Shown: piece by piece, positions 7,925-63,303 of the stretch
How the letters are laid out: each line of letters begins with the position of its first letter
Numbering within the stretch: position 1 is the stretch's first letter
Source: Heterodontus francisci
Lineage: Eukaryota
DNA length: 64,000 nt
NCBI RefSeq assembly: GCF_036365525.1
Contig: NC_090387.1
Span: 88,949,691 to 89,013,690, forward strand
Reading direction: 5' to 3'
Position numbers and translations under genes: made by a program
The notes under the pieces: model-generated
Seen by the model: the letters and a program-made list of their open reading frames with translations, nothing else
Databases searched by the model: none
Told to the model about the DNA's origin: nothing

Positions 7925-10686
7925 TTTTTATTATTATTCATTCATGGGATGTGGGCGTCGGTGGCTCGGCCACCATTTATTGCCCATCCCTAATTCCCCT
8001 TGAGAAGGTAATGGTGAGCTGCCTTCTTGAACCGCTGCAGTCGAGGTTGGGCACGTACATCCACAGTGCTGTTTAAAAGAGAGTTCCAGGATTTTCACCA
8101 AGCGGCAGTGAAGGAACGGCCATATAGTTCCAAGTCAGGATGGTGTGTGACTTGGAGGGGAACTTGCAGGTGGTGGTGTTCCCATGCATTTGCTGCCATT
8201 GTCCTTCTAGTTGGTAGAGGTCACAGGTTTGGAAGGTGCTGTCTAAGGAGCCTTGTTGCATTGCTACAGTGCATCTTGTAGTTGGTGCACACTGCTGCCA
8301 CTGTGCATCGGTGGTAAAGGGAGTGAATGTTGTGGATGGGATGCCAATCAAGCGGGCTGCGTTATCCTGGATGGTGTCGAGCTTCTTGAGTATTGTTGGA
8401 GCTGCAGCCATCCAGGCAAGTGGAGAGTATTCCATCACACTCCTAACTTGTGCCTTGTAGATGGTGAACAGTCTTTGGGGAGTCAAGAGGTGAGTTACTA
8501 ACCACCGGATTCTGAGCCTCTGAAATAAAAACAAGAAATACTGTAAATACTCGGCAGGTCTGGCAGAATCTGTGGAGAGAGAAGCAGAGTTAACGTTCCA
8601 GGTCAGTTACCCTTCTTCAGAACTGACCTGAAATTTTAACTCTGCTTCTCTCTCCACAGATGCTCCCAGACCTGCTGAGTATTTCCAGAATTTCTTGCTT
8701 TTATTTCAGATTTTCAGCATCCGCAGTATTTTGCTTTTATTATTCCGAGCCTCTGACCTGCTCTTGCAGCCACGGTATTTATATGGCTACTCCAGTTCAG
8801 TTTCTGGTCAATGGCAGCCCCTGGGATGTTGATAGTGGGGGATTCAGCGATGGTAATGCCATTGAAAGTCAAGAGGAGATGGTTAGATTCTCTCTTGTTG
8901 GAGATGGTCATTGCCTGGCACTTATGTGGCGTGAATGTTATTTGCCACTCATCAGGCCAAGCCTGGATATTTTCCAGGTCTTGCTGCATATCTTCAGTAT
9001 GTGGGAGTCGCGAATATTGCTGAATATTGTGCAATCATCAGCGAACATCCCCAATTCTGACCTATTGATTGAAGAAAGGTCATTAATGAAGTAGCTGAAG
9101 ACGTTTGGGCCTAGAACACTACCCTGAGAAACTCCTGCAATGATGTTCTTGAGCTCAGAAGATTGACCTCCAACAACCACAACCATCTTCCTTTGCCCTA
9201 GGTATGACTCCAACCAGTGGAGAGTTTTCCCCCTGATTCCCATTTACTTCAGTTTTGAGAGGGCTCCTTGATGCCATACTCAGTCAAATTCTGCCTTGAC
9301 GTCAAGGGCAGTCACTCTCACCTCACCTCTTGAGTTCAGCTCTTTTGTCCATGTTTGACCCAAGGCTGTAATGAGGTCAGGAGCTGAGACACCCTGGCGG
9401 AACCCAAACTGAGCATCACTGAGCAGGTTATTGCTAAGCAAGTGCTACTTGATGGCGCTATTGATGACACCTGCCATCACTTTACTGATGATTGAGGGTA
9501 AACTGATGAGGTGGCAATTGACCGAGTTGGACTTGTCCTGCTTTTTGTGTACAGGGCATCCCTGAGACATATTCCACATTGCTGGGTAGATGCCAGTGTT
9601 GTAAGCTGTACGGGAACAGCTTGGCTAGGGGCGCAGCCAGTTCTGGAGCGCATGTCTTCAGTACTATTGCCGTAATATTGTCATGGCCTATTGCATTTGC
9701 AGTATAAAATACCTTCAGTCGTTTCTTGATATCACACGGAGTAAATTGAATTGGCTGAAGTCTGGCGTCTGTGATGCGGGAGACTTCAGGAGGAGGCCGA
9801 GATGGTTCATCAACTCGGCACTTTTGGCTGAAGATTGTTGCAAATGCTTCTCCCTGATTTTTTCACTGATGTGCTGGGCTTTCCCATCATTGAAGATCGG
9901 GATATTTGTGGAGCCACCTCCTCCTGTTAGTTGTTTAATTGTCCACCACCATTCATGGTTGGATGTGGCAGGACTACAGAGCTTAGATCTCATTCATTGA
10001 TAATGAAATCGCCTCGTTCTGTCTGCCGCATCCTGCTTATGCATTATTAGGTTGACACCTTATTTTGAGGTATGCCTGGTGCTCCTCTTGGCATGCCCTC
10101 CTGCACTCTACGTTGAACCAGGGTTGGTCTCCTGGCTTGATGGTAATGGTAGAGTGGGGGACATGCCGGGCCATGAGGTCACAGATTTTCGTTGAGTACA
10201 ATTCTGCTGCTGTTGATGGCCCACAGCGCCTCATGGATGCCCAGTTTTGCATTGCTAGATCTGTTCAAAATCTATCCCATTTAGCACAGTAATAGTGCCA
10301 CACAACACGATGGACGGTATCCTCAATGCGAAGGCGGGACATCGTCTCCACAACGACTGTGCAGTGGTCACTCCTAGCAATTCTGTCATGGACAGATGCA
10401 TCTGCAGCAGGCAGATTGGTGAGGACGAGGTCAAGTATGTTTTTCCCTCACCATCTTCCACAGACCCAGTCTCGCAACTATGTCCTTTAGGAGTCGGCCG
10501 GTAGGGGTGCTACAGATCCACTCTTGGTGAAGGACATTGAAGTCCCTAACCCAGAGTACATTCTGTGCACTTGCCGCCCTGAGTGCTTCCTCCAAGTCAT
10601 GTTCAACATGGTGGAGTACTGATTCGTCAGCTGATTGAACGCAGTAGGTGGTAATCAGCAGGAGGTTTCCTTGCCCATGTTTGACC
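7925..10686 (-). mobile_element. CR1-group LINE of the second (tRNA-headed) family, 5'-truncated, interrupted by a PLE hairpin
   Basis: Frameshifted ORFs GIRGKTLHWLESYL..GVSQGSVLGP..MFADD and TIYKAQVRSVMEYSPLAW. The 3' end ttcatgggatgtgggc...atttattgcccatccctaat is shared with other copies. Confidence 0.9.
8524..8741. mobile_element. Minimal Penelope-type insertion: two inverted terminal repeats forming a hairpin
   Basis: 8524-8610 and 8622-8708 are inverted copies. The insertion is flanked by a 15-bp duplication attctgagcctctga (8509-8523) / attccgagcctctga (8742-8756). Confidence 0.85.
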
Positions 10687-19993: not shown

Positions 19994-20345
19994 GGGCGGC
20001 ACAGCGGCACAGTGGTTAGCACCGCAGCCTCACAGCTCCAGCGACCCGGGTTCAATTCTGGGTACTGCCTGTGTGGAGTTTGCAAGTTCTCCCTGTGTCT
20101 GCGTGGATTTTCTCCGGGTGCTCCGGTTTCCTCCCACAAGCCAAAAGACTTGCAGGTTGGTAGGTAAATTGGCCATTATAAATTGCCCATAGTATAGGTA
20201 GGTGGTAGGGAAATATAGGGACAGGTGGGGATGTGGTAGGAATATGGGATTAGTGTAGGATTAGTATATATGGGTGGTTGATGGTCGGCACAGACTCGGT
20301 GGGCCGAAGGGCCTGTTTCAGTGCTGTATCTCTAAAAAAAACTAA
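19994..20345 (+). mobile_element. Full-length HE1-like V-SINE (tRNA-derived)
   Basis: A box cggcacagtggtta, B box gggttcaattc, V-domain core tgtgtggagtttgca.gttctccc..gtctgcgtgg.ttt..ctccgggtgctccggtttcctccca, and CR1-derived tail gggccgaagggcctgtttc.gtgctgta. Confidence 0.9.
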
Positions 20346-30481: not shown

Positions 30482-33365
30482 GTTATTCATTCGAAGTGTG
30501 TGCATAATTGACAAGGCCAGCATTTATTTTCCATCACTACTTGCACTTGAGAAGTTGTTGCGCAGTTGCGTTCTTGAACTGTGCAGTGCATGTGGTGTGG
30601 GAACACCCAGAGTGTTGTTAGGAAGTAACTTCCATGATTTTGACCCAGCGACAATTAAAGGAATGGTGATAAGTTCCAACTCAGGATGGTGAGTGACCTG
30701 CAGGAAAACCTGCAGGGATTAGTGTTCCCATGTGTCATCTACCCTTCTTCTTGGAGGTGGTAGAAGTCACAGTTTTTGGAAGGTGTCGTCAAAGGGGAGT
30801 TGGCGAGTTCCTGAAATGCATCTTGTAGATGGTACACACTGCTGCCACTATCCACTGGTCATGGAGGTAGTGAATTTTGACTGTGGTAGATGGGGTGTTG
30901 ATCAAGTGGACTGCTTTATCCTGGATGGTGCTGAGTTTCTTGAGAGTTGTTGGAGCCGCACTCATCCAGAAGTGAAGAGTATTTATTCATACCTCTAATT
31001 TGTGGTTTGCAGATACAGGACTGGCTTTGGGAAGTCAGGAGGTAAGTTATTCTACTCGGAATCCCCAGTCTCTGACTTGCTCATGTAGCCACAATAATTA
31101 TATGGCTGATCCAGTTAGGCATCAGCTGAATGGTGACCCCCTAGGATTTTGATGATGGGGGAATCGGCGATGGCAATGCTGTTGAATATCAAGGAGAGAT
31201 GGTCAGATTGTTCTTTGGCAGAGATGATCATTGCCTGGCACTTCTGTGGCAGAATTATATTTCCAAATATCAGCCCAGGCCTAAATTTTTACATATATTT
31301 CTGTATGTGGACACAGACTGCTTCAGCATCTGAGGGGTTGTGAATGTTACGAAACACTGTGCAATTGTTAGCGGACATTTCCACTCCTGACCATATGTTG
31401 GACCGATGAAGTGGCTGAAGATATTTGAGCCTAGAACACTATTCTGAGGAACTCCTGCAGCGATGTCCTGGGGCTGAGATAATTGGCCGCCACCAACACA
31501 ACGATCTTCCTTTTCTCAAGATGCCAAAAACCAATGGAAATATTTCCTCCTGATTCCCACTGACGTCAATTTTGTTAACGCCTTTTGGTGCCAGATGAAG
31601 GCAAATGCTGCCTTGATCTCAAGGGCAGCCACTCTCACCTCAGCTCTGGATTCCAACTCTTTTGTTCAAGTTTCGACCAAGGCTGGAATGCGATCTGTAG
31701 CCGAGTAACCCGGGCAGAACCCAAACTGAGCATCAGTGAGCAGGTTCTTGCTGAGTGAGTCCGACTTGATAACACTGTCACTGACACCTTCCATCACTTT
31801 GCTGTCGACTGAGAGTCGATTGATGGGGCAGTAATTGGCCGAATTGGATTTGCCCTCCTTGTTGTGGACAAGACATAACTGCCCAATTTTCCATATTGTT
31901 GGGTAGATGCCAGTGCGGTAGCTGCACTGGAACAACTTGGCTAAGGGCGCGACTACTTCTGGAGTACAAGTCCTCAGTACTGCAGCGGCGTTGTTTTCAG
32001 AGCACATAGCCTTTAATGCATCCAGCAACTTCAGCCATTTATTGATATCACGTGGTGTTAAGTGAATTGGCTGAAAGCGGGCATCTGTGACGTTGGATAC
32101 CAATGTGGATCCTCCACTTGGCACTTCCAATTGAAGATTAGATTAGATTAGATTAGAGATACAGCACTGAAACAGGCCCTTCGGCCCACCGAGTCTGTGC
32201 CGAACATCAACCACCCATTTATACTAATCCTACACTAATCCCATATTCCTACCAAACATCCCCACCTGTCCCTATATTTCCCTACCACCTACCTATGATT
32301 GCAAATGCTTCAACCTTGTCATTTGCACTGACGTGCTACCATTGACGACAGGGATTGATGTGGTGCCTCCTTCTCTTGTTAGGTGTTTAATGGCCACCAC
32401 CATCCACAGCTGGATGCAAAAGGACTGCAGAGCTTTGACCTGATCTGTGATTGTTGGATCACTTTGCTCTGTCAATAGCATCTGCATCTACTGTTAAGCA
32501 TGCAGGTAGTCCTGTGTTGTAGCTTCAAAAGGTTGCATCTGATTTTAGATATGCCTGGTGTTGCTCTGGCATGATCTCCTACACTTCCTATTGAACCAGG
32601 GCTAGTCCCCTGGCTGGATGATAATGGTCGATTGAGGGATATGCCAAGCCATGAGGTTATAGATTGTGATTGAATACAATTCCACTGTTTCTGAAGGCCT
32701 GCAGTGCCATGAGTCAATGTTGAGGGCTCCCACAGGGCCACTCCCTCCCGAGTGTACACCACTATGCCACCACTCTGGTAGGTCTGTCCTGACGATGGAA
32801 CAGGACATAACCAGGGATGGTGACGAAGGAGTTTGGGACATTAGCCGTAAGGTATGATTCAGGCAGTATAACTGTGGCAGGTGGTTGCCTTATTAGTCTG
32901 GGAAAACTCTCGTAGTTTTTGCACAAGTCCCCAGAAGTTAATGAGGAGAAATTTGTAAGGTCGACGCGGCAGGTTGTGAAATGGTCATTTCGGGTCTCGA
33001 GATCGTTGCCGGGTGATCTCTCGGTTTTGTTCTTATTTAACTTTTCTGCAGTGGTTTGATACAACTGAGAGGCTTGTTAATCATTTCAGAGGGCAGTGAA
33101 GAGTCAATCACTTTGTTTTGAGTCTGGATTCACACGGAGACCAGACTGGGTCTCGACGCCAGATTTCCGTTCCTGAACGGCATTAATGGACTAGATGAAT
33201 TTGCAACAATCCTGTAATTGCACGACTAATTTTTTTTAAATCCCAGATTTATTAATTTATTGAATTTAAATTTATCCAGCTGCCGTGACGTGGTTTGAAC
33301 TCATGTCCCCAGACCATTAGCTGAGACTTCTATATTGCTTCAGTACTGCTATGCTACCGTCTCCC
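30482..33365 (-). mobile_element. 5'-complete copy of the tRNA-headed CR1-group LINE (internally deleted, decayed)
   Basis: 3' tail at ~30482-30560, RT region (ORF 31666..32130), APE N-terminus (ORF 32762..33064 VILPESYLT..IPGYVLFHRQDR), and head GGGAGACGGTAGCATAG...GAGTTCAAACC ending at 33365. Confidence 0.85.
32136..32296 (-). mobile_element. HE1-like V-SINE 3' fragment inserted in the LINE
   Basis: Reverse complement of the SINE tail at 20195-20335, with a (TCTAA)n end. Confidence 0.85.
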
Positions 33366-35592: not shown

Positions 35593-36240
35593 ACTTATAA
35601 GCCCACCGAATCCCACAGCTACCTCGACTACACTTCTTCACTTCCTGCCTCCTGTCAGGACTCCATTCCATTCTCCCTGTTTTTCCGTCTCCAACGCATC
35701 TGCTCTGATGATGCAACCTTCCACAACATCGCTTCGGATATTTCTTCTTTTATTCCTCAACCGAGGATTCTCCCTCCCCTCCCCTCCCCCCACCCCATTA
35801 GGGTTCACAGGACTCTCAACCGAGTTCAGCCTGTTTCCCACCTTTCTGCCCTCATCCCTTCCCCTCCCTCCCAGAACTGTGACAGTGTTCCCCTTGTCCT
35901 CACTTTCCACGCCACCTGCCTCCACATCCAGAGGATCATCTTCTGCCATTTCCGTCACATCCAGTGTGATGCCACCACCAAACGCATCTTCCCCTCTGCA
36001 CCCTGTCTGCATTTCAAAGGGCTTGTTCCCTCCACGACACCCTGGTCCACTTCTCCAATACCCCCGACACCTCGCCCCTTCCCATGACACCTTCCCATGC
36101 AATCTCAGGAGATGCAATGCATGCCCATTTAGCTCCTTTCTTCTCACTGTCCAACGTCCCAAACACTTCTTTCAGGTGAAACAGCAATTTACGTGTACTT
36201 CTTTCAATTTAGCGTACTGTATTCGATGCTCACAATGCGG
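35593..36240 (+). mobile_element. Penelope-like element coding fragment (RT C-terminus, linker, start of GIY-YIG endonuclease)
   Basis: YKPTESHSYLDYTSS.P..C.DSIPFS.F.RL.RICSD, then PCNLRRCNAC..FQVKQQFTCTSFNLAYCIRCSQCG, typical of the PLE thumb, Cys-rich linker and GIY-YIG entry. Confidence 0.85.
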
Positions 36241-36259
36241 AAGTGCCAAGCGAGTGATC

Positions 36260-37908
36260 TATCTCAGCCCCCTCCTGAAGTTCCAGCATCACAGATGGCA
36301 GTCTTCAGCAAATTCGATTCATTCCATGTGATATCAGGAAACGACTGAAGATACTGGATACAGCAAAGGCTATAAACCCTGACACCATTCTGGCAATAGT
36401 GCTGAAGACCTGTCCTCCAGAACTTGCCGTGCCCCTTGCCAAGCTGTTCCAGTACAGCTACAGGAAATCTACCCAGCAACGTGGAAAAATGTCCAGTTAT
36501 ATCCTGTAAACAAAGAGCAGGACAAATCCAACCCGGCCAATTACCACACCATCAGTCTACTCTCAATCATCAATGAAATGATGGAAGGTGTCATTGACAG
36601 TGCTATCAAGCAGCACTTGCTTATCAATAACCTGCTCAGTGACGCTCAGTTTGGGTTCCATCAGGACCACTCAGCTCCTGACCCCATTACAGACTTGGTT
36701 CAAGCATGGATAAAAGATCTGAACTCAAGAGGTGAGGTGAGATTGACTGCCTTGTCATCAAGGCAGCATTTGTCCGAGTATGGCAACAAGGAGAACCTGC
36801 ACGACTGGAGTCAATGGGAATCAGCAGGAAAACTATCCACTGGTTGGAGTCATACCTGACACAAAGGAAGATCATTCTGGGCGTTGGAGGTCAATCATCT
36901 GAGCTCCAGGACATCACTGCAGGAGTTTCTCAGGGTAGTGTCCTTGGCCCAATCATCTTCAGCTGCTTCATCAATGACCTTCCTTCAATCATAAAGTCAG
37001 AAGTGGGGAGGTTCACTAATGATTGTATAATGTTCAGCACCATTCGTGACTCCTCAGATACTGAAGCAGTCCGTGTAGAAATACAGCCAGACCTAGACAA
37101 TATCCAGACTTGGACTGATAGGTAGCAAGTAACATTTGTGCCACACAACTGCTAATCAATGAAAATCTCAAACAAGAGCGAGGATCTAGCCATCTCCCCA
37201 TGACATTCAATGGCATTACGGTTGTTGAATCCCCCACTATCAACATCCTGGGGGTTATCATTGTCCAGAAACTGAACTGGAATAGCCAAATAAACACTGT
37301 GCTACAAGAGCAGGTCAGAGGCTAGGAATCCTGCAGCGAGTAACTGACCTCCTGACTCCCCAAAGCCTGTCCACCATCTACAAGGCACAAGTCAGGAGTG
37401 TGATGGAATATTCTCTACTTATCTGGATCGGAGCAGCTGCAACAGCACTCAAGAAGCTTGACACCATCCAGGACAAAGCAGCCACTTGATTGTCACTCCA
37501 TTCACAAACATTCACTCCCTCCACCACCGGCACACATTGGCAGCAATGTGTACAATCTATAAGATTCACTGTAACAACGCACCAAGGCTCCTTAGACAGC
37601 ACCTTCCAAACCCATGGCTTCTACCACCTAGAAGGACAAGGGCAGCAAATGCATGGGAACATCATCACCTGCAAGTTCCCCTCCAAGCCACACACCATCC
37701 TGACTTGGAACGATATCGCTATTTCTTCACCATCACTGGGTCAAAATTCTGGAACTCCCTTCCTCACAGCACTGTGGGCGTATCTACCCCAAATGGACTG
37801 CAGCAGTTCAAGATGGCAGCTCACCAACACCTTCTCAAGGGCAAGTAGGGATGGCAATAAATGCTGGCCAAGCCAGTGACGTCCACATCCCATGAACCAA
37901 TAAAAAAG
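36260..37908 (+). mobile_element. tRNA-headed-family CR1-group LINE, 5'-truncated
   Basis: ORFs 36578..36859, 36814..37125 (GVSQGSVLGP..FSCFINDL) and 37486..37848; 3' tail ggcaataaatgctggcc..cacatcccatgaa. Confidence 0.9.
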
Positions 37909-38799: not shown

Positions 38800-39125
38800 G
38801 GTGGTGCAGTGGTTAGCACCGCAGCCTCACAGCTCCAGCGACCCTAGTTCGATTCCGGGTACTGCCTGTGTGGAGTTTGCAAGTTCTCCCTGTGTCTGCG
38901 TGGGTTTCCTCCAGAGCACCCTCCCACATGCCAAAGATTTGCAGGTTGATAGGTAAATTGGCCATTATAAATTGCCCCTAGTATAGGTAGGTGGTAGGGA
39001 AATATAGGGACAGGTGGGGATGTGGTAGGAACATGGAATTAGTGTAGGATTAGTATAAATGGGTGGTTGATGGTCGGCACAGACTCAGTGGGCCGAAGGG
39101 CCTGTTTCAGTGCTGTAGCACTAAA
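38800..39125 (+). mobile_element. HE1-like V-SINE, near full-length
   Basis: Colinear with 19994-20345. Confidence 0.88.
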
Positions 39126-47399: not shown

Positions 47400-50300
47400 G
47401 ACCTGATCATTCTGTTTTCCCCTGCAGGTGAATCACAGCTACAGCCAGGCGACATATCCAGGGACATCCGTCCACCTCTGAGGAGGAGGTGGGGACCTCA
47501 GGTTGTGCCGTGACACATCCTTTCCCTGCACTAAACACCAGCTCAGATACGGTCATCGTGGTTGGGCTGATTGCATCTTCAGATCTGTGGTCACAACCTG
47601 GTGCTAGCACTGCACAAGTGCCGGACCAGCTGCCAGAGGCAGTTTTGGCCAATGCCTCCAACATTCAGAGGACTGTGCTGAGCCGCATAATGATGACGAG
47701 CCTCTGAGGTCATCCATTCAGTGGGAGATGTTATAGGTGTAGTGTGGAGATCTGACAAAGTTGCCAGAGACGATGCATGCTCTGGCTTAGACTCTGGAGG
47801 TGTACTTCCAGGGCATGAGTTCAGCAAAGTCCCTGTTATCTAAGTGACTGGCTTCCTCCATTGACAAATTGGCAGCGGCAGTGGAGATCCAGCTCCAGCA
47901 GGCCACCCAATGCCTGTCGGAGATGTGCAGAGACCTTAAAACCCTCGCCTTGTCAATGAGTGCAATGCATCAGTGGCTATGCAAGATAAGGACGAGGCTC
48001 CTGGGGTCTCCTCCAAGTGCTCATCCCTCTGAGATTAGCAGAGAGGCTCAAAAGAAACTCATGAAAGCACATAAGCAACAGCAGTATGCATCTAGTAGCT
48101 CCTCTCAGGACCCTCCTGATGCATACAGCAGCTCCTTGTCCCCTCTGTCAGTGACACTAGCACCTCAGAATGTCAGGATGACTGAGGGTGGTCCTGAGAC
48201 TTCTCAGGGTCACCTCAATATGCCAGGATCCTCATGACCCTGGGCAGCTGGAGGGCACCCGCCAAGGGGCATCCTGATCAGCCACCTGCCTCTGACTGGG
48301 CTGGCAGTGAGAGGACTTCGACACGTTTGAGCACTCACAAATGTAACTGCACTTTGGGTTCATTGGTGTGATTTGGAATCATGTTAATTTACGTGCTACT
48401 TCCCACAAACTTGTTTTTTTAATTTCTCATTTGGCTTATTTATGTCTCAAATGGTGATGTATGAGGCGAACATTTTCTTCTGCATGAGATGGAGGCTTGG
48501 GAGAGGTGCACCCTTGGGCCATGGTGCATTAGATGGAAAGTTGGACCGTTGAAGCTGAGATTAACGCCTGCAGGTGAGTGCTTTTGTGCTTCCAGCAGAT
48601 GTGAATGCCTGAATTTGGATTGAAATGCCAGTCACTGGCATAGTACATGGGTGATGAGCCTCAGGTCAGTGGAAACACCTGAGTATTAGAGCCTCCCTTG
48701 CACCTAACTCCTGCAAACCTCCAACTGCTTCCCCCAGATGTTCAGGTGGCTGCTCCCCCTTCTCCTCCTCAATCCCTTCCCCCTCCTCATGTGAGGATGC
48801 CTCATGCTAAACAATGTCCTTCACATCCAGGGCCTTGCCCCTCTGCAGCGCCAGGTTATGTAAGGCACAGCAGAAAACAACAATGCGAGATACCCTTGCT
48901 GGCGAGTACTGAAGGGCACCACCTGAATGTTCCAGGCATCTAAATCTCATCTTCAGAAGACCTATGTTCTGCTCAATGATGACTCTGGTGGCCACATGGT
49001 TCACATTGGATCATTCCTCTGCTCCATTCCATGGGTTCCTCACGAGTGTCATCAGCCATCTCTTCGGTGTGTAACTGCTGTCACTCAGTGTCCATCCGAG
49101 CAAGCACTCAGGAGGACTGAAAAGCACTGGCATCTGGGAATTCCGGAGAATTAATGCATCGTGACTGCTTCCTGGATAACGAGCACACATCTGAAATATA
49201 CTCTCATGGTGTCACAGACAAGTTGCACATTCATTGAGTGAAACCATTTTTGATTAATGAAGACCCCTTACAGACTTGCAGGTGCTCCAATGGCCACATG
49301 TGTACAGTCAATCATGCCTTGGACCATGGGGAACCAAGCAATGGTGCTGAAGCCTTTGGCTCTCTTGGCCTGACCGGTGGAATCAGTCTGGCTCTTGGTG
49401 AACTGGTTGGCACACCTGAATATGGCATCAGCAATCACCTTTTTGCAGTACTGTGCTGATGGTTGTGAGATTCCGAACGTCTCCTGTTTCTTTTTATTAT
49501 TATTCATTCATGGGATGTGAGCATCACTGGCTATGCCAGCATTTATTGCCCATCCCTAATTTCCCTTGAGAAGCTGGTGCTGAGTTGCCTTCTTGATCCG
49601 CTGCAGTCCATGTGGGGTAGGTACACCCACAGTGCTGTGAGGAAGGGAGTTCCAGAATTTTGACCCAGCAACAGTGAAGGAGCAGCGATATAGTTCCAAT
49701 TCAGGATGGTGTGTGACTTGGATGGGAACTTGCAGGGGATGATGTTCCCATGCATCTGCTGCTCTTGTCTTTCGAGGTGGTAGAGGTCACAGGTTTGGAA
49801 GGTGCTGTCTAAGGAACCTTGGTGCGTTGATGCAGTGCATCTTGTAGATGGCACACACTGCTGCCACTGTGCGTCAATGGTGGAGGGAGTGACTGTTTGT
49901 GGATGGTGTGCCAATCAAGTGGGTTGCTTTGTTCTGGATGGTGTCGGGCTTCTTGAGTGTTGTTGGAGCTGTGTATTCCATCACACTCCTGACTTGTGCC
50001 TTGTAGATGGTGGACAGGCTTTGGGGATTCAGGAGGTGAGTTACTCGCCACAGGATTCCTAGCCTATGACCTGCTTTTGTAGCCACGGTATTTATATGGC
50101 TACTCCAGTTCAGTTTCTGGCCAATGGTAGCCTCTAGGATGTTGATAGTGGAGGATTCAGCGATGGTAATGCCATTGAATGTCAAGGGGAGACGGTTATA
50201 TTCTCTCTTGTTGGAGATAGTTATTGCCTGGCACTTGTGTGGCATGAATCTTCCTTGCTACTTATCAGCCCGAGGCTGGATATTGTCCAGGTCTTGCTGC

Positions 50301-52996
50301 ATTTCTACACAGACTGCTTCAATATCTTAGAAGTCACGAATGGTGCTGAACATTGTGTAATCATCAGTGAACATCCCCACTTCTGACGTTATGATTGAAG
50401 GAAGGTCATTGATGAAGCAGCTGAAGATGGTTGGGCCTAGGACACTACCCTGAGGAACTTCTCCAGTGATGTCCTGGAGCTCAGATGATTGACCTTCAAC
50501 AACCACAACCATCTTCCTTTGTGCTAGGTATGACTCCAACCAGCGGAGGGTTTTCCCCCTGTTTCCCATTGACCTCAGTTTTGCTAGGGCTCCTTGATGC
50601 CATACTCGGTCAAATGCTGCATTGACGTCAAGAGCAGTCACTCCCACCTCACCTCTTGAGTTCAGCTCTTTTGTCCATGTTTGAACCAAGTCTGTAATGA
50701 GGTCAGGAGCTGAGTGGCCCTGGCGAAACCCAAACTGAGCATCACTGAGCAGTTTATTGCTAAGCAAGTGCTGCTTGATAGCACAGTTGATGACACCTTC
50801 CATCACTTTACTGATGATTGAGAGTCGACTGATGGGGCAGTAATTTACCAGGTTGGATTTGTCCTGCTTTTTGTGTACAGGACATACCTAGGCAATTTAC
50901 CACATTGCCGGGTAGATGCCAGTGTTGTAGCTGTACTGAAACAGCTTGGCTAGGGGTGAGGCAATTTCTGGAGCACAGATCTTCAGTACTATTGCCAGAA
51001 TATTGTCAGGGCCCATAGCCTTTGCAGTATCGAGTGCCTTCAGTCTTTCCTTGATATCACGCGCAGTGAATCGAATTGGCTGAAGTCTGGCATCTGTAAT
51101 GCTGGGGACTTCAGGAGGAGGCCGAGATGGATCATCAACTCGGCACTTCTGGATGAAGATTGTTGCAAATGCTTCAGCCTTATCTTTCGCACTGATGTGC
51201 TGGACTCCTCCATCATTGAGGATGGGGATATTTGTGGAGCCACCTCCTCCAGTTAGTTGTTTAATTGTCCACCACCATTCACGACTGGATGTGGCAGGAC
51301 TGCAGAGCTTAGATCTGATCCGTTGGTTATGGGATCGCTTAGCTCTGTCTATCGCCTGCTGCTTATGCAGTTTGGCATGCAGATAGTCCTGTGTTGGAGC
51401 TTCACCAGGTTGACACCTCATTTTGAGGTATGCCTGGTGCTGCTCCTGGCATGCCCTCCTGCACTCTTCATTGGACCAGGGTTGGTCTCCTGGCTTGATG
51501 GTAATGGAAGAGTGGGGGATATGCCGGGCCATGAGGTTATAGATTGTGGTTGAGTACAATTCTGCTGCTGCTGATGGCCCACAGCGCCTCATGGATGCCC
51601 AGTTTTGCATTGCTAGATCTGTTTGAAATCTATCCCATTTAGCATGGTGATAGTGCCACACAACACGATGGACGGTATCCTCAATGTGAAGGCGGAACTT
51701 CGTATCCACAAGGACTGTGCAGTGTTCACTCCTACCAATACTGTCATGGACAGAAGCATCTGCGGCAGGCAGATTGGTGAGGATGAGGTCAAGTATGTTT
51801 TTCCCTCATGTTTGTTCCCTCACCACCTGCTGCAGACCCAGTCTAGCAGCTGTGTCCTTTAGGACTCGGCCAACTCGGTCAGTAGTGGTGCTACCGAGCC
51901 ACTCTTGGTGATGGACAATGAAGTCCCCTACCCAGAGTACATTTTGTGCCCTTGCCACCCTCAGTGCTTCCTCCAAATGGTGTTCAACATGGAGGAGTAC
52001 TGACTCATCAGCTGAGGGAGGGCGGTAGGTGGTAATCAGTAGGAGGTGACCTTGTCCATGTTTGATCTCCTGTGGATGCCTGGAAGGAGCCTGATGCATA
52101 GACATTCAGAGCGACTGTGACCTTTAGTGCCAGCGGCATTGGATGACCACCCACGCAGTTGGAGCTGACCTCCACTGCCATCATCTCACACAGAGATGTG
52201 ACAGTCTCTCAGGACAGGCGCAGTCTTCTACAGCACTGGTGTTCCAACATCTGCAGAAAGCTCAGTCACTGCCAGTACACCCTGCCTACTGGGTAGAATC
52301 ATCACTTCACAGGTATTTATCTCAGTGCACTCTGTGGCCTTCTGCCCCTCCCCCATAACCAGGCTGTAGTTGGCCAGCAGGTCACTGATTTCCCTGACTA
52401 TTTGTCCCCCTGTCCCTCCTTGTGACATTCTCTTCCTCGCCGGTCGATCCTCCTCCAGAGCAAACAATGTCCACGGTTGCAGCATCCCAAAGATGTATTG
52501 GGGACAGTTGTTTGCTACCTGTACCATGAGACCTTTTGTCATTTAATGTCTCCAGTCCTTTACCCTACCACCCACAACCCCTGTCTCCTACTTAGGATAA
52601 ATCACTTATGTTGTGGCCCTACCAGGCGGTTTACTCACTCAGGTGAGCCCTGGTGAGCCAGCAATATTAGTCCCGACCTTGGAATTAACTCATAGATATA
52701 ACAGACAGAACTGAAAATTCAAGTACCTCCAACTCCTTCACTGACACAGCAGTTGCCGCTCATTTAAAGCTGCCCGGTCTGCGACCCCCCGTTTGACCCG
52801 TGCGCAGAAAGTAAAATCGAACAGCCAATGTAAAATGGCTGTCAATTGCCTTTAATCGGACAGTGAACAGCTGTCTGATGAGAGTAAAATAAACATTGGG
52901 CATAATGACGTTGGGGACCCGTTCCAACATCATGACCTGCCGTTTTTCATTTCCGCCTCTGAGGGCACACGATTTGGCAAGGTCAAATTCTGGCCC
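47400..52996 (-). mobile_element. PIF/Harbinger DNA transposon remnant split by a LINE; transposase on minus strand
   Basis: HARBI1-like motifs ALNVYASGSFQ (~52075-52110), FPMVQGMIDCTHVAI (49268..49507) and TRVIIEQNIGLLKMRFRCL..CCALHN (48807..49004). Terminus aaattctggccc at 52985-52996. 47400-48340 is probably the decayed second (Myb/SANT-partner) gene on + (inference). Left boundary uncertain. Confidence 0.8.
49488..52065 (-). mobile_element. Best-preserved copy of the tRNA-headed-family LINE (5'-truncated), inserted in the Harbinger transposase
   Basis: ORFs 51806..52105 (LWVGDF), 50897..51709, 50327..50806 and 49874..50245. 8-bp duplication tctcctgt at 49480-49487 and 52066-52073. Confidence 0.92.
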
Positions 52997-56189: not shown

Positions 56190-56384
56190 GTGAAGGTCAG
56201 GAGCCTGTCATACACACAATGACCAGCAGGCAGCCTCAGCTCACTAACCTCCTGCTGAAGATCACATTAACTGTTCAGATCCCAGCAGCAGAGGAACTTC
56301 TGCTTCCTGTGGCCATGCAGTTCTTCAACCAAATTTCCACACAAATAGGAGCCACTGCAGAATCTGTTTTTTCGCTTCTACTTT

Positions 56385-57345
56385 CCTTGGATGTGAGCGT
56401 CACTGGCTAGGCCAGCATTTATTGCCCATCCCTAATTGCCCTTGAGAAGGTGGTGGTGTGCTGCCTTCTTGAATGCTTGCAGTCCATGTTGTCCAGGTAC
56501 ACCCACAGTGCTGTGAAGAAGGGAATTCCAGGATTGTGACCATGCAACAGTAAAGGAACGGTGATATAGTTCCAAATCAGGATGGTGTGTGCCATGGAGG
56601 GGAACTTGCAGATGATGGTGTTCCCATGCATCTGCTGTGCTTGTTCTTCTAGGTGGTAGAGGTTGTGTGTTTGGAAGGTGCTGTTGCCGAGTTATTCCAG
56701 AGCATTGTGTGTATGGTACACACTGCAGCCACTGTGCACTGGTGATGGAGGGAGTGAATGCTTAATATAGAGGATGGAGTGCCGATCGAGAATGCTGCTT
56801 TGTCCTGGATGGTGTTGAGATTCTTGAGTGTTGTTGGAGCTGCACCCATCCGGGCAAGTGCAGAGTATTGCAAGACACTCCTGACTTGTGCCTTGTAGAT
56901 CATGGACAGGCTTCGGGGTGTCAGGAGGTGAGTTACTCACCACAGAATCCTCAGCGTCTAACCTGCTCTGGTAGCCACAGTATTTTTATTGCTGGTCCAG
57001 TTAAGTTTCTGGACAATGGAAAGCCCCCAGGATATTGACGGTTAGGGATTCAGTGATCGTAATGTCACAGAAAGTCAAGGGAGATGGTGAGATTTTCTCT
57101 TGCTGGAGATGGTCATTGCCTGGCACTTGTGTGGTGTAAATGTTACTTACCAATTATCAGCCCAAGACTGAATGTTGTCCAGGTCTTACTGCACATGGGA
57201 ACAGACTGCTTCAGTATCTGAGGAGTCGTAAACAGTCCTGAACATTGTGCAATCATCAGTGAATATTCTCACTTCTGACCTTATGATAGATGGAAGATCA
57301 TTGGGCCTTGGAACTAACCTGAGGAACTCCTGCATCGATGTCCTG
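56385..57345 (-). mobile_element. tRNA-headed-family LINE 3' portion
   Basis: IYKAQVRSVLQYS..GAAPTTLKNL (56649..56903) and the shared 3' tail. Confidence 0.85.
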
Positions 57346-57504
57346 GTAAAATAGCAGTGGGGGTGGGTAAGTGACGAGAACGGCACCCTCCCACCCCCCC
57401 CCCCCCCCCCGCCTCCTCCCCTCCCCCGCCCCACCCCCGCTTCCCATTTGATTTTCCATCCTCTCCCACCTCACAGCCCTTTACCGGGTGTAACATTCCG
57501 GCCA

Positions 57505-58005
57505 TTTCTGTGTTTGCATGTGTCTTTGTGTGTATCTTTGTCACTGTGTCCATCTATGTGTGTGTCTGTTTCTGTGTCTTTGTGTCTGACTTTGTACATA
57601 GGTGTACCTACATGTGTGACCTGTCGGTGTTTGTATGTATGCCAGATTGTTTGTTGTATGTGTCTTTCTATGTGTGTTTTTGTGGTGTGTGTGTGTATCT
57701 GTTCTGATGTCTCTATATGCGTACCTGTTTGTGTTTGTCTGTGTCTGTATGTGTGTGTATCTATCTTGTGGGTGTATGCATGTCTGCTCGTTCGCGCTTG
57801 TTTGTGACTGCATGTGTCTGTTCATCTGTTTACATCTGTGCCTGTGCACATGTCTGTATCGGTCTGTGAGTCTCTGTGTTTGTTTGTGTGTCTGTGTTGT
57901 CTGTGTGTGTTTTTGTTTGGTTGTGTGTATTGTTGTGCGTTTCTGTTTATATGTGTCTATGCTTTGAGTGTGTATGTAGATCTGTATTTGTATCTATGTG
58001 CATTT
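57505..58005 (+). repeat. Degenerate TG-rich low-complexity tract, preceded by a poly-C tract at 57385-57440
   Basis: Imperfect (TG)n/(TGTC)n runs; the Cys/Val-rich ORFs here are artefacts. Confidence 0.85.
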
Positions 58006-58014
58006 TTCATTTTC

Positions 58015-61000
58015 TTTCACTGGATGTGGGCATCACTGGCTAGGCCAGCATTTATTGTACCTCATTGCCCTTGAGAAGGTGGTAGGGAGGGGCATTAATG
58101 AACTGCTGCAGTCCTTGTTGTGTAGATACACCAACAGTGCTGTTAGGAAGGGAGTTCCCAGATTTTGACCCAGCAACAGTGAAGGAAAGGCCATATAGTT
58201 CCAAGTCAGGATGGTGTGTGGTTTGGAGGGGAACTTGCAGGTGATGGTGTTCCCATGCATTGGCTGTCCTTGTCCTTGTAGGTGGTAGAGATCGTGGATT
58301 TGGAAGGTGCTGTCAAAGGAGCCTTGATGAGTTGCTGCACCGCATCTTGTAGATGGTACACACTGCTGCCACTGTGCATCGGTGGTGGAGGGAGTGAATG
58401 TTGAAGGTGGTGAATGGGGTAACAATCAAGTGGGCTGCTTTATCCTGGATGATGTCAAGCTTATTGATTGTAGTTGGAGCTGCACCCATCCAGGCAAGTG
58501 GAAAGTATTCCATCACACTCCTGGCATGTGACTTGTAGATAGGAGACAGGCATTGAGGAGTCAGGAGGTGAATTACTCACAACAGAATTCACAGCCTCTG
58601 ACCTGCTCTTATTACTTATATGGCCTGTCCTGTCCAGTTTCAGGTCAATGGTAACCCCCCCACCCCCCTCAGGATGTTGATAGTAGAGGATTCAGCAATG
58701 GTAATGCCATTGAATGTCAAGGGGAGATGGTTGGATTGTCTTTTGTTGAAGATGGTCATTGCCTGGTACTTGTGTGGTGGGAATGTTACTTGTCACTTAT
58801 GAGCCCAAGCCTAAATGTTATCCAGATCTTGCTGCATATGGACACGGACTACTTCAGTATCTGAGGAGTCGCAAATGGTGCTGAACATTGTGCAATCATT
58901 AGTGAACATCCCCACTTCTGACCTTATGATGGAGGAAAGGTCATTGATGAAGCAGCTGAAGATGGTTGGGCCTAGGACACTACCCTGAGAAACTCCTGCA
59001 GTGATGTCCTGGGACTGAAATGATTGATCTCCAACAACAACAACCATCTTCCATTGTGTTAGGTATGATTCCAAACAGTGGAGAGCTTTCCCCCTGATTC
59101 CCATTGACTCCAGTTTGGCTCGAGCTCCTTGATGACACAATTGGTCAAAATGCTGCCTTGATGTCAAGGGCAGTCACTCTCATCTCACCTCTGGAGTTCA
59201 GCTCTTTTGTCCATGTTTGGACCAAGGTTGTAATGAGGTCAGCAGCTGACTCGCCCTGACGGAACCCAAAATGAGCATCAGTGAGCAGGTTATTGCTGAG
59301 TATTTGCTCTCTCATAGCACTGTCGATGACACCTTCCATCACTTTTCTGATGATCAAGTGTAGACTGATGTGGTGGTAATTGGCCGGGTTGGATTTGTCC
59401 TGCTTTTTGTGTACAGTATATGCCGGGGCAATTTTCCACATGGTTGGCTAGATGCCAGTGTTGTAACTCAACTGGAACAGCTTGGCTAGGGGCACGGCCA
59501 GTACTCGAGAACACGTCTTCAGTAATATTGCTGGAATGTAATCATGGCCCATTGCCTTGCAGTATCCAGTGCCTTCAACCATTTCTCAATACCATATGGA
59601 GTGAATAAAATTGGCTGAAGACTGGCATCTGTGATGCTGGTGACCTGAGGAGGAGGCCAAGGTGGATCATCCACTTGGCACTTCTCGCTGAAGATGGTTG
59701 CAAAAGCTTCAGCCTTGTCTTTTGCACTGATGTTTTGGGCTCCCCTATCATTGAGGATGGAGATATTTGTGGAGCCTCCTTCTTCAGTTAGTAGTTTAAT
59801 TGCCCATCATCTTTTACGACTAAATGTGGCAGGTCTGCAGAGCCTCGATCTGACCCGTTGCTTATGGGATTGCTTAGCTCTGTCTATTGCATGCTGCTTC
59901 CACTGTTTGGCACACAAGTAGTCCTGCGTTGTAGCTTCACCAGGTTGACACCTCATTTTTAGGTATGCATGTGTGCTGCTCTTGGCATGCCCTCCTGCAC
60001 TCTTCATTGAGCCAGGGGTAAGTGGAGGATATAGCCTGGGCATAAAGTTACAGATTGTGGTTGAATACAGTTCTGCTACTGCTGATGGCACATAGCACCT
60101 CATGGATGCCCAGATTTGTGTTGTTAGATCTGTTCAAAATCTATCCCATTTAGCATAGTGGTAGTACCACACAACACGATGGAGAATATTTTCATATTTT
60201 CAATTGTGGTTCACAAAAGAAATTAGGGATAGTATTAGATCCAAGGAGGAGAAATATAAAATGGCCAGAACAAGCAGCAAACATGAGGATTGGGAGCAGT
60301 TTAGAATTCAGCAAAGGAGGACAAAGGGATTGATTAGGAAGTGGAAAATAGAATATGAGAGTAAGTTTGCAGAGAACATAAAAACTGACTGGAAAGCTTC
60401 TATAGATATGTGAAAAGAAAAAGATTAGTGAAGAAAAATGTGGTTCCCTTACAGTCAGAAACAGGGGAATTTATAATGGGGAACAAAGAAATGGCAAACC
60501 AATTAAATACATACTTTGGTTCTGTCTTCACAAAGGAGGACACAAATTACTTCCCAGAAATGTTGGGGAACATAGGGTCTAGTGAGAAGGAGGAACGGTA
60601 TGAAATTAGTATTTGTAGGGAAATGGTGTGAGGGAAATTGATGGGATTGAAGGCCAATAAATCCCCAGGGCCTGATAATTTGCATCCCAGAGTACTTAAG
60701 GATGTGGCCCTAGCAATAGTAGATGCATTGCTGGTCATTTTTCGAAATTCTATAGACTCTGGAACAGTTCCAACAGATTGGAGGGTAGCTAATGTCACCC
60801 CATTATTTAAAAAAGGAGGTGGAGAGAAAAGAGGGAATTATGGACTGGTTAGCCTGACATCAGTAGTGGGGAAAATGCTATAAAAGATGTAATAGCAGAG
60901 CACTTAGAAAACAATGACAGGATCGGACAAAGTCAACATGGATTTACAAAAGGGGAATCATGCTTGACAAATCTATTGGAATTTTTTGAGGATGTGACTA

Positions 61001-63100
61001 GTAGAATAGATAAGGGAGAACCAGTGGGTGTGGTGTATTTGGACTTTCAGAAGGCTTTCGATAAAGCAAAATTAGAGCACATGGGGATTGGGGGTAAGGT
61101 ATTAACATGGATAGAGAACTGGTTGGCAGACAGGAAACAAAGAGTAGGAATAAACCGGTATTTTTCCGAGTGTCAGGCAGTGACCAGTGGGGTACCGCAG
61201 GGACCAGTGCTAGGACCCCAGCTATTCACAATATATATTAATGATATAGATGAGGGAATTAAAGGTAATATATCCAAGTTTGCAACCGATACGAAGCTGG
61301 GTGGGAGTGTGAGCTGTGAGGAAGATGCAGAGAAGCTCCAGTGTGATTTGGACATGTTGAAGCAAATACATGGCAGATGCAGTATAATGTGGATAAATGT
61401 GAGGTTATCCATTTTGGTGGCAAAACCAGAAAGGCAGATTATTATCTGAACGGCGATAGATTGGGAAAGGGGGAGGTGCAGCGAGACCTGGGTGTCCTTG
61501 TGCACCAGTCACTGAAAGTAAGCATGCAGGTACAGCAGGCAGTTAAGAAGGCAAATGGTATGTTGGCCTTCATAGCAAGAGGATTCGAGTACAGGAGCAA
61601 GGATGTCTTACTGCAATTATACAAGGCCATAGTGAGACCACATCTGGAGTATTGTGTGGAGTTTTGATCTCCTTATCTGAGGAAGGATGTTCTTGCTATG
61701 GAGGGATTGCAGTGAAGGTTCACCAGACTGATTCCTGGGATGGCAGGACTGATGTATGAAAAGAGAAATTGAGTCGATTAGGTTTGTATTCACTAGAGTT
61801 TAGAAGAATGAGAGGGGATCTCATAGAAACCTACAAAATTCTAACAGGACTTGACAGACTAGATGCAGGAAGGATGTTCCTGGTGGCAGGGGAGTCCAGG
61901 ACCAGGGGTCACTATCTCAGGATAAGGGGTAAGCCATTTAGGAGTGAGATGAGGAGAGATTTTATTCACCCAGAGAGTGGTGAACCTGTGGAATTCTCTA
62001 CCACGGAAAGCAGTTGAGGCCAAATCATTAAGTATATTCAGGAAAGAGTTAGATATAGTTCTTAGGGCTAATGGGATCAAGGGATATGGGGAGAAAGCAG
62101 GAACAGGTTACTGAGTTTGGATGATCAGCCTTGATCGTGTTGAATGGCGGAGCAGGCTCGAAGGGCCGAATGGCCTACTCCTGCTCCTATTTTTCTGCAA
62201 CAAGTGTGCGGTGATCACTCCTACCAATACTGTCAAGGGCAGATGCATCTGTAACACGTGGATTGGTGAGGACGAGGTCAAGCAGATTTTTCGCTCTTGT
62301 TTGCTCACTCACCTCCTGCCACAGACCCACTCTAGCAGCTATGTCCTTCAAGACTGGGCCGGTAGTGTTGCTACCAAGGCATGTTTGGTGATGAACATTG
62401 AAGTCCCCTACCCAGAGTACATTCTGTCCCCTTGCCACTGACATTTCAAGTGATGCTCAACACGGGAGGAGTACTGATTCATTAGCTAAGGGTGGTAATT
62501 AGCAGAGGGTCCCGTGCCCACATTTGATGTCATGAAACTTCATGGTGTCTGGATTCAATGTTGAGGACTCGCAGGCAACTGCTGCCCGACTGTATACCAT
62601 TGCGTTGCCACCTCTGGTGATTCTGTCCTGCCGGTGGGATAGAACATACCCAGGAATGGTAATGGTGGTGTCTGTAAGGTGTCAGTCCATGAGCATGAAT
62701 ATATCAAGCTGTTGGAACAGCTTTCCAATTTTGGCAGAAGCAGAAGTAAGGAGGACTTTGCAGGGTTGGGTGTGTCTTTATCATTTCTGGTCTATCCAGT
62801 TTCATTCCTCTTTAGCTTTTCTCTAACAGTTTGGTACATTTCAGAGGGTATTTAAGAGTCAACTACATGGAGGCCAGATGGTGTAAGGATGGCAGATTTC
62901 CTTCCCTAAAGGACAATAGTGAACCAGATAGATTTGTGACATTCATCATCATTATCGAGACTAGGTTTTTTAAATTCTAGATTTATTAATTGATAAGAAA
63001 TCCCACCTGCTGCTAGGGTGGGATATGAACCCATGTCCGCAGAGCATTACCTTTCTGGATTGCTGGTCCAGTAATATTACCACTATGCCACCACCTCCCC
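58015..63100 (-). mobile_element. Second 5'-complete tRNA-headed LINE, split by a CR1 insertion (halves 58015-60192 and 62195-63100)
   Basis: The halves join colinearly against 51650-51760. ORFs 62187..62444 (LWVGDFNVHH..LDLVLTN..GRSDH, APE) and 58811..59167 (RT). Head GGGGAGGTGGTGGCATAGTGG...GGGTTCATATCC. Confidence 0.88.
60200..62190 (+). mobile_element. CR1/L3 LINE nested in the tRNA-headed LINE
   Basis: ORFs 60638..60883 (KSPGPDNLHPRVLK), 60964..61449 and 61377..61667 (RPHLEYCVEF). Confidence 0.9.
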
Positions 63101-63229
63101 ATGCATGTACATATGAGCGTGCCCATATATGTGTGTGTCGGTATGTTTATGTCTTTCTAAGTTATGTAATGTCTAACTACCCATCTGTGTGTGTGCCCCT
63201 GTATCTCACTGCAATGTTTGTGTTTATTG

Positions 63230-63230
<1 letters not shown>

Positions 63231-63303
<73 letters not shown>
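63231..63303 (+). repeat. Perfect (TG)~36 microsatellite
   Basis: Uninterrupted TG run. Confidence 0.97.

Follow-up and report, generated by a model that had tools for sequence, protein, structure and literature searches.

Long interspersed nuclear elements (LINEs) are transcribed by RNA polymerase II (Pol II) and code for protein, whereas short interspersed nuclear elements (SINEs) rely for transcription on RNA polymerase III (Pol III), are non-coding and borrow only the tail of a LINE. We wondered how this usual division applies to a LINE family of the horn shark Heterodontus francisci whose 5' end looks like the head of a SINE. The family was studied in a 64-kb stretch of DNA (64,000 nucleotides of contig NC_090387.1, positions 88,949,691 to 89,013,690; hereafter the window, in whose own numbering all positions are given). 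An initial annotation had proposed that the head, with its Pol III-type A and B boxes, belongs to the master element and is not a SINE that lies beside it by chance. Our data support this: the head is an integral part of the LINE family. Indeed, the entire 5' untranslated region (UTR; ~300-335 nt) of the LINE is a SINE-type module that consists of a head, with A and B boxes at the first nucleotides, and a body of ~200 nt. We lean towards describing the family as a composite retrotransposon without long terminal repeats (non-LTR), with a SINE-type 5' module, a partner SINE and, as a working model, Pol III acting at the head.

The shark LINE is ~3.2 kb long, a length estimated from the 905 + ~40 + 2181 nt present in copy A plus the small deletions of that copy. 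It has a single open reading frame (ORF) encoding an AP-type endonuclease and a reverse transcriptase (RT), followed by a hairpin-bearing 3' tail. All copies of the family within the window are dead, and several are 5'-truncated, as is usual for LINEs. The parts of copy A and the other copies are as follows.

63100 to 58003, minus strand: copy A as a whole, interrupted by a nested LINE at 60343-62195.
63000 to 63100, minus strand: head of copy A (sequence, motif scan with shuffles, alignment with copy B from the common GGGAG).
62837 to 62999, minus strand: body (core) of copy A, common to copy B and the SINE form (alignment, contig joints, 25-nt motif).
62196 to 62836, minus strand: leader, candidate start codon (62805-62803) and endonuclease of copy A (sequence, Pfam, homology to copies C and D).
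58003 to 60183, minus strand: rest of the ORF of copy A (linker, RT, C-terminal region) and 3' tail (BLAST map, Pfam RVT_1, tail alignment and fold).
30497 to 33365, minus strand: copy B, the second copy with a head (head 33365-33270; boxes 33356-33346 and 33301-33291; ORF N-terminus from ~33064).
49493 to 52021, minus strand: copy C, the best preserved, 5'-truncated ~600 nt into the element.
7927 to 10684, minus strand: copy D, 5'-truncated, with an altered tail hairpin.
36240 to 37896, plus strand: copy E, 5'-truncated, 3' half only.
56381 to 57346, minus strand: copy F, 5'-truncated, last ~1 kb.

Copies A and B share one order of parts: GGGAG start, A/B-box head, body of ~200 nt, short leader and endonuclease frame. 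They could be aligned (MAFFT, BLAST) from the common GGGAG into the endonuclease frame in that same order with ~69% column identity; two ~20-nt deletions distinguish the body of copy A from that of copy B. The alignment bore out what had first been noticed about these copies, namely that minus-strand 5' ends at 63100 and 33365 carry the same head and that a ~200-nt core common to both follows it. Both copies have the same 5' start and the same junction between head and LINE, and within the window the head is found only where a LINE 5' end exists.

We asked how common the head is across the genome. Public reads of the same species were mapped on positions 58000-63220 at a likeness of at least 80%, and the summed depths in X8, a raw DNA run, are given below from the 3' to the 5' end of copy A; word depth is a poor measure of copy number.

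58175-58349: tail, ~28,700.
59925-60099: linker region 5' of the RT core, ~4,260.
62200-62374: 3' part of the endonuclease, ~2,500.
62375-62549: middle of the endonuclease, ~1,270.
62550-62724: start of the endonuclease, ~1,110.
62725-62899: leader, ~620 (copy A has deletions here).
62900-63074: head/body, ~990.
63075-63220: flank bin, ~160.

In this run, the head was about as common genome-wide as the 5' coding end of the LINE, there was no excess of heads, and similarity ended near 63100. Such a profile is expected of an integral head but not of a hyper-abundant SINE existing on its own. Together with the shared start and junctions in two copies that are ~69% identical, the smooth read depth argues for a head that is part of the master element.

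The coding part of the element leaves no space for ORF1. In copy A, Pfam matches were found to Exo_endo_phos_2 on 62444-62190 and to RVT_1 on 59167-58814, and pieces of copies A and C match these two domains. The copies are damaged in different ways: the endonuclease domain of copy A is frameshifted and is interrupted at 62195 by the nested insertion, copy B has lost most of its endonuclease and has received a truncated SINE of another family at ~32140-32290 (minus strand), and copy C is divided into stop-free pieces of 99, 270, 159 and 123 aa. The N-terminus was located using a 100-aa frame of copy B (33064-32765), whose residues 56-94 pair in the alignment with residues 53-91 of P0006. This single-ORF relative is intact, 983 aa long, has endonuclease and then RT, and is encoded on ENA contigs of 3.6-3.8 kb. 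P0006 and two further intact single-ORF relatives of 983 aa, P0152 and P0154, show 40% identity. The alignment places the start of the ORF ~300-335 nt from the 5' end and ORF1 therefore cannot fit, in agreement with the initial annotation. The unit that starts with the head carries one ORF for endonuclease and RT, as expected of the single-ORF, SINE-headed element that had been proposed.

An AP-type endonuclease followed by RT in one ORF without RNase H is the arrangement of the CR1 group, and the shark family has it, as its Pfam matches and the same order of domains in P0006 indicate. The RT motifs of the headed LINE (GVPQGSVLGP and LDIKAAFDRVWH) are presumably Jockey/CR1/L2-like and not RTE, an assignment made by reading motifs. 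The accompanying statement that CR1-group LINEs normally carry ORF1 was too general, since ZfL2-2, a LINE of the L2 clade, is able to retrotranspose with ORF2 as its sole reading frame (PMC4176376). As members of L2 without ORF1 are known, its lack does not exclude the shark family from the CR1 group.

If the ORF is taken out of the LINE, what is left is the partner SINE, with head and body joined to the LINE tail. It was found in contigs of the runs X5 and X6, which come from the same sample as the DNA run X1 and are guessed to be RNA. One joint leads from 62871 directly to 58055, and another from 62837 to 58083 with 36 other letters between. Read on the sense strand, head and body lead into the final ~50-110 nt of the LINE, and the skipped part does not have GT..AG ends. 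Relative to the DNA contigs of X1, the X5 contigs gave 0.095 for the head/body, 0.13 for the tail and 0.014 for the endonuclease region, an enrichment of ~6-7 times. The joined form therefore has a body from the 5' region and a tail from the 3' end of its partner LINE. Only this deleted derivative is SINE-sized; the headed unit itself, at ~3.2 kb and with coding sequence, is not a short, non-coding SINE2.

We then considered the head itself. The 5' end of copy A reads GGGGAGGTGG on the minus strand from 63100, and that of copy B reads GGGAGACGG on the minus strand from 33365. The A box of copy A, TGGCATAGTGG (63090-63080, minus), matches TRGCNNAGTGG without a mismatch and starts at element position +11. 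The B box, GGTTCATATCC (63031-63021, minus), lies 48 nt after the A box and has one mismatch to GGTTCRANNCC. The motif scan thus agreed with the perfect A box and B-box-like motif first noted for copy A. When the whole window was scanned for pairs of boxes with at most one mismatch per box and 25-70 nt apart, the pair of copy A was the only one on the minus strand; two pairs on the plus strand (20005 and 38802) belong to an ordinary, unrelated SINE. Mononucleotide shuffles gave a chance expectation of 0.17 pairs per window. In both headed copies, 10 nt separate the start of the element from the A box.

At the opposite end, the six tails have in common GGGCAATAAATGCTGGC-NNN-GCCAG...CACATCCCATGAATGAAT, then A-rich sequence. 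They end in (TGAA)2 before this A-rich sequence, and the end of copy A is GAA-rich. The hairpin GCTGGC-NNN-GCCAG is kept across the tails, and the tail folds better than shuffles do (z = -2.5). In the tail of copy D (7950-8000, minus) a compensatory double change was found, with GGTGGC...GCCACC in place of the GCTGGC...GCCAGT of other copies. A paired change of this kind suggests that the stem is under selection, presumably because the LINE protein recognizes it. A stem-loop followed by short terminal repeats is the make-up of a 'stringent'-type tail and matches the tails of L2-type LINEs (PMC4176376).

How might such an element be transcribed? The A box at +11 gives the head the layout of an internal Pol III promoter of type 2, and because this promoter-type head stands at the very 5' end, each full-length cDNA copy would carry its own promoter. 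According to the working model, Pol III would initiate at the head and make a short SINE RNA, and at some rate it would read on through the 3.2-kb LINE, which is poor in runs of four T (TTTT). The ORF protein would then recognize the 3' hairpin common to both RNAs and copy either. The use of Pol III, the translation of RNA made in this way and the sequence of events, in which the LINE gained a SINE head or the SINE arose by deletion, are inferences. The most far-reaching version of the model, which we put forward tentatively and hold to be rather unlikely, is that an autonomous, protein-coding LINE is transcribed in full by Pol III from an internal promoter of the tRNA type, that its uncapped RNA serves as mRNA and template, that its promoter is common to a deletion-derived SINE, and that this is the first LINE 5' region outside RTE and Vingi to act as a SINE body.

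The distribution of TTTT on the sense strand bears on this model. The better-kept copies C, E and F and the 5' part of copy A contain none. Almost all runs in the older sequences (the 3' part of copy A, copies B and D) are private single-base changes, and the one run common to two copies lies at a site that is TTTC in copy C; a C-to-T change may therefore have produced it in each of the two. How strong the depletion appears depends on the null model, as the following counts show.

Mononucleotide shuffle: copy C, 0 against 4.2 expected; copy E, 0 against 3.2; copy F, 0 against 2.1; 5' part of copy A, 0 against 2.5.
Dinucleotide-preserving shuffle: copy C, 0 against 1.4 expected, with 20% of shuffles reaching 0 (not significant).
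Synonymous-codon shuffle within the stop-free pieces of the ORF: copy C, 0 against 2.7 (p=0.034); pieces of the whole family taken together, 3 against 8.05 (p=0.021).
Synonymous-codon shuffle of a control LINE family (the family of the nested LINE, same window): 11 against 12.5 (p=0.35).

The control family also had TTTT at the expected rate under the mononucleotide and dinucleotide-preserving nulls. Overall, the depletion of TTTT gives modest support for Pol III.

The alternative that survives best accepts the head as integral to the LINE but denies that it is the LINE promoter. Full-length RNA would be made by Pol II, from an internal promoter in the 5' UTR or by read-through from a host gene, and the tRNA-derived module could possibly be a relic of origin, a means of RNase P-type 5'-end definition, a binding site for TFIIIC or a promoter of the SINE only. 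We give this explanation a substantial chance, if one short of even. It gains from an AATAAA ~40 nt before the 3' end of the tail, by which Pol II polyadenylation stays possible, and from the weak TTTT depletion under dinucleotide-preserving shuffles. Head/body and tail greatly outnumber the ORF part among the contigs that are probably RNA, as if Pol III made mainly the short form. Furthermore, we know of no natural precedent for a translated Pol III transcript of 3 kb. In contrast, TTTT runs fall below the synonymous-codon expectation in the headed family, which is not true of the control LINE family, and both copies have their first base 10 nt ahead of the A box, where Pol III would be expected to initiate. 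The decayed heads also lack the cloverleaf that RNase P would need, though decay may explain this.

The AATAAA, the dinucleotide result and the want of a precedent weigh against the composite, Pol III-driven reading, and several further observations do so as well. The boxes of copy B, TAGCATAGCAG (33356-33346) and AGTTCAAACCA (33301-33291), have two mismatches each. ARAGORN called neither head a tRNA, the Rfam tRNA model did not match either head at E<=10, and the heads of copies A and B folded no better than shuffles and formed no cloverleaf. In heads this old, decay may be enough to account for the missing signal. The initial description of the head as tRNA-like consequently holds for the box motifs and their spacing, on which we base the label, but not for tRNA detection or fold. 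As to the partner SINE, the RNA nature of X5 and X6 is a guess, contigs cannot show where transcripts start, and among the matches listed for the DNA runs X1 and X8 its joints did not appear. Finally, no significant target-site duplications, which would prove a single insertion event, were found for copy A or B. Copy A is flanked on both sides by CA-rich DNA, a (CA)n microsatellite at 63232-63298 and low-complexity sequence at 57400-58000. It apparently landed in a CA-rich tract, and any target-site duplication would be hidden there.

A second alternative explains the headed copies as separate accidents without a headed master, arising either by repeated insertion of a SINE beside the 5' end of a LINE or by recurrent switching of the template from LINE to SINE RNA. 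Chimeras formed by template switching, such as U6-L1, are indeed known from LINE reverse transcription, and like the shark element they have a Pol III-type small-RNA sequence fused 5' of a LINE. Moreover, just two headed copies can be inspected directly in the window. U6-L1 chimeras, however, are one-off dead ends with variable junctions and 5'-truncated L1, whereas the shark element is a propagating family with a fixed junction and a 5'-complete LINE. Accidents should vary and involve truncated LINEs, but copies A and B, at 69% identity, agree in their junction and in having the LINE 5' part complete, and the genome-wide depth of the head matches that of the LINE 5' end. A 25-nt motif of the body occurs only twice in the window, in copies A and B, despite six real family tails (the tail motif matches seven places, six of which are real tails). 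With the body motif confined to these copies, no free abundant SINE of this kind is scattered in the window. We therefore regard separate accidents as highly improbable.

That copies A and B derive from one segmental duplication and amount to a single observation, a concern raised at the outset, has next to no probability: a single 64-kb window holds both, on its minus strand, but their ~69% identity, the lack of visible similarity in the ~10 nt aligned upstream of GGGAG, wider flanks that are unrelated by eye and different later damage (a 1.85-kb nested LINE at 60343-62195 in copy A, which resumes at 60183; the endonuclease deletion and the SINE in copy B) mark them as independent old insertions.

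The family can be compared with known systems. Structured RNA modules at the extreme 5' end of ORF1-less or simple LINEs, which could define the 5' end of the template, are also found as HDV-like ribozymes (named after hepatitis delta virus) in R2, RTE and L1Tc, and such ribozymes define the 5' ends of R2 and RTE elements. HDV-like ribozymes self-cleave, whereas the shark module is tRNA/SINE-like and has promoter boxes. The 'stringent' LINEs of the L2 clade, ZfL2-2 of zebrafish and UnaL2 of eel, are likewise short, have one ORF for endonuclease and RT and lack ORF1 (PMC4176376). Their tails, with a hairpin and short terminal repeats, are common to a tRNA-derived SINE and serve as the recognition site of the LINE protein (PMC4176376). 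What LINE and SINE have in common there is limited to the 3' tail, and the LINE has its own 5' UTR (with repeats in ZfL2-2), whereas in the shark LINE the whole 5' UTR is SINE head and body.

As in the shark, a SINE that holds both ends of its LINE, as expected from internal deletion, is known from BovB/Bov-A/Bov-tA, Vingi-2_ACar/SINE2-1_ACar and RTE-derived SINEs (PMC5786205). Kojima (2018; PMC5786205) found SINE bodies with 5' regions of LINEs for the RTE and Vingi clades only, and in those cases the tRNA head is present on the SINE alone. There the head was added upstream on the SINE and the autonomous LINE is without one (PMC5786205); in the shark the LINE itself is headed, and by our own reading its RT motifs are not RTE-like. 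We found no description of a tRNA-headed LINE in the literature by topic queries or by exact sequence-motif queries; Repbase and Dfam were outside this scope, and prior curation there is possible. As far as can be told, the headed LINE is apparently new, although the absence of ORF1 alone is already known in L2-clade LINEs.

Gene models from Heterodontus francisci, Heptranchias perlo and Rhincodon typus contain fragments of the ORF that are 70-81% identical to copy C. Their presence in horn, sevengill and whale shark indicates that the family is old, occurs widely among sharks and is a major component of the genome. No intact ORF of the family was found among 1.84 billion protein representatives, which yielded only fragments or chimeric gene models at 70-81% identity. 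The nearest intact relatives are ENA proteins, and a moth and amphioxus gave weaker matches. When metagenomes were scanned with a 17-nt motif of the body, 87 chance matches were returned, none of them homologous by BLAST. One gene model, the 827-aa protein P0009 with sushi/CCP-like repeats, contains a stretch of ~115 aa from the linker region of the LINE at 72% identity, which is either an exonized LINE fragment or an annotation artefact.

Other repeats share the window with the headed family. The LINE nested in copy A (60343-62195, plus strand) is 1.85 kb long, 5'-truncated and of another family; its RT reads VVYLDFQKAFD...FATDTKLGG and is one that we take to be CR1-like. In the reads, repeats of 8 nt (GTTCTTAT-like) form a tail where this LINE ends on its 3' side, near 62192. 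The ordinary tRNA-derived SINE is present on the plus strand at 20000-20335 and 38800-39125, its A and B boxes separated by 33 nt, and a truncated copy of it sits inside LINE copy B (~32140-32290, minus strand). Its body, presumably of the V-SINE type, reads TGTGTGGAGTTTGCA.GTTCTCCC...GGTTTCCTCCCAC, its end is GGGCCGAAGGGCCTGTTTCAGTGCTGTA, and it is unrelated to the LINE head. A first guess, that the headed element is the published HE1/HER1 pair or a V-SINE, was dropped, as other families of the window fit better: the published HER1 tail, presumably CR1-like, would fit the other LINE family, and the ordinary SINE at 20005 and 38802 carries what is presumably the V-type body. Upstream of copy A, the segment 63500-63830 (minus strand) is rich in repeated CCCGACCCGA and GGGTCGGG motifs.

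A LINE whose whole 5' UTR is made of a SINE head and body blurs the division between LINEs and SINEs. The headed LINE also offers a testable route to SINE bodies by internal deletion, a route that Kojima (2018) documented only for RTE and Vingi. If Pol III does make the 3.2-kb RNA, the family would provide a natural Pol III transcript that is translated, and this would explain selection against T-runs in its coding sequence.

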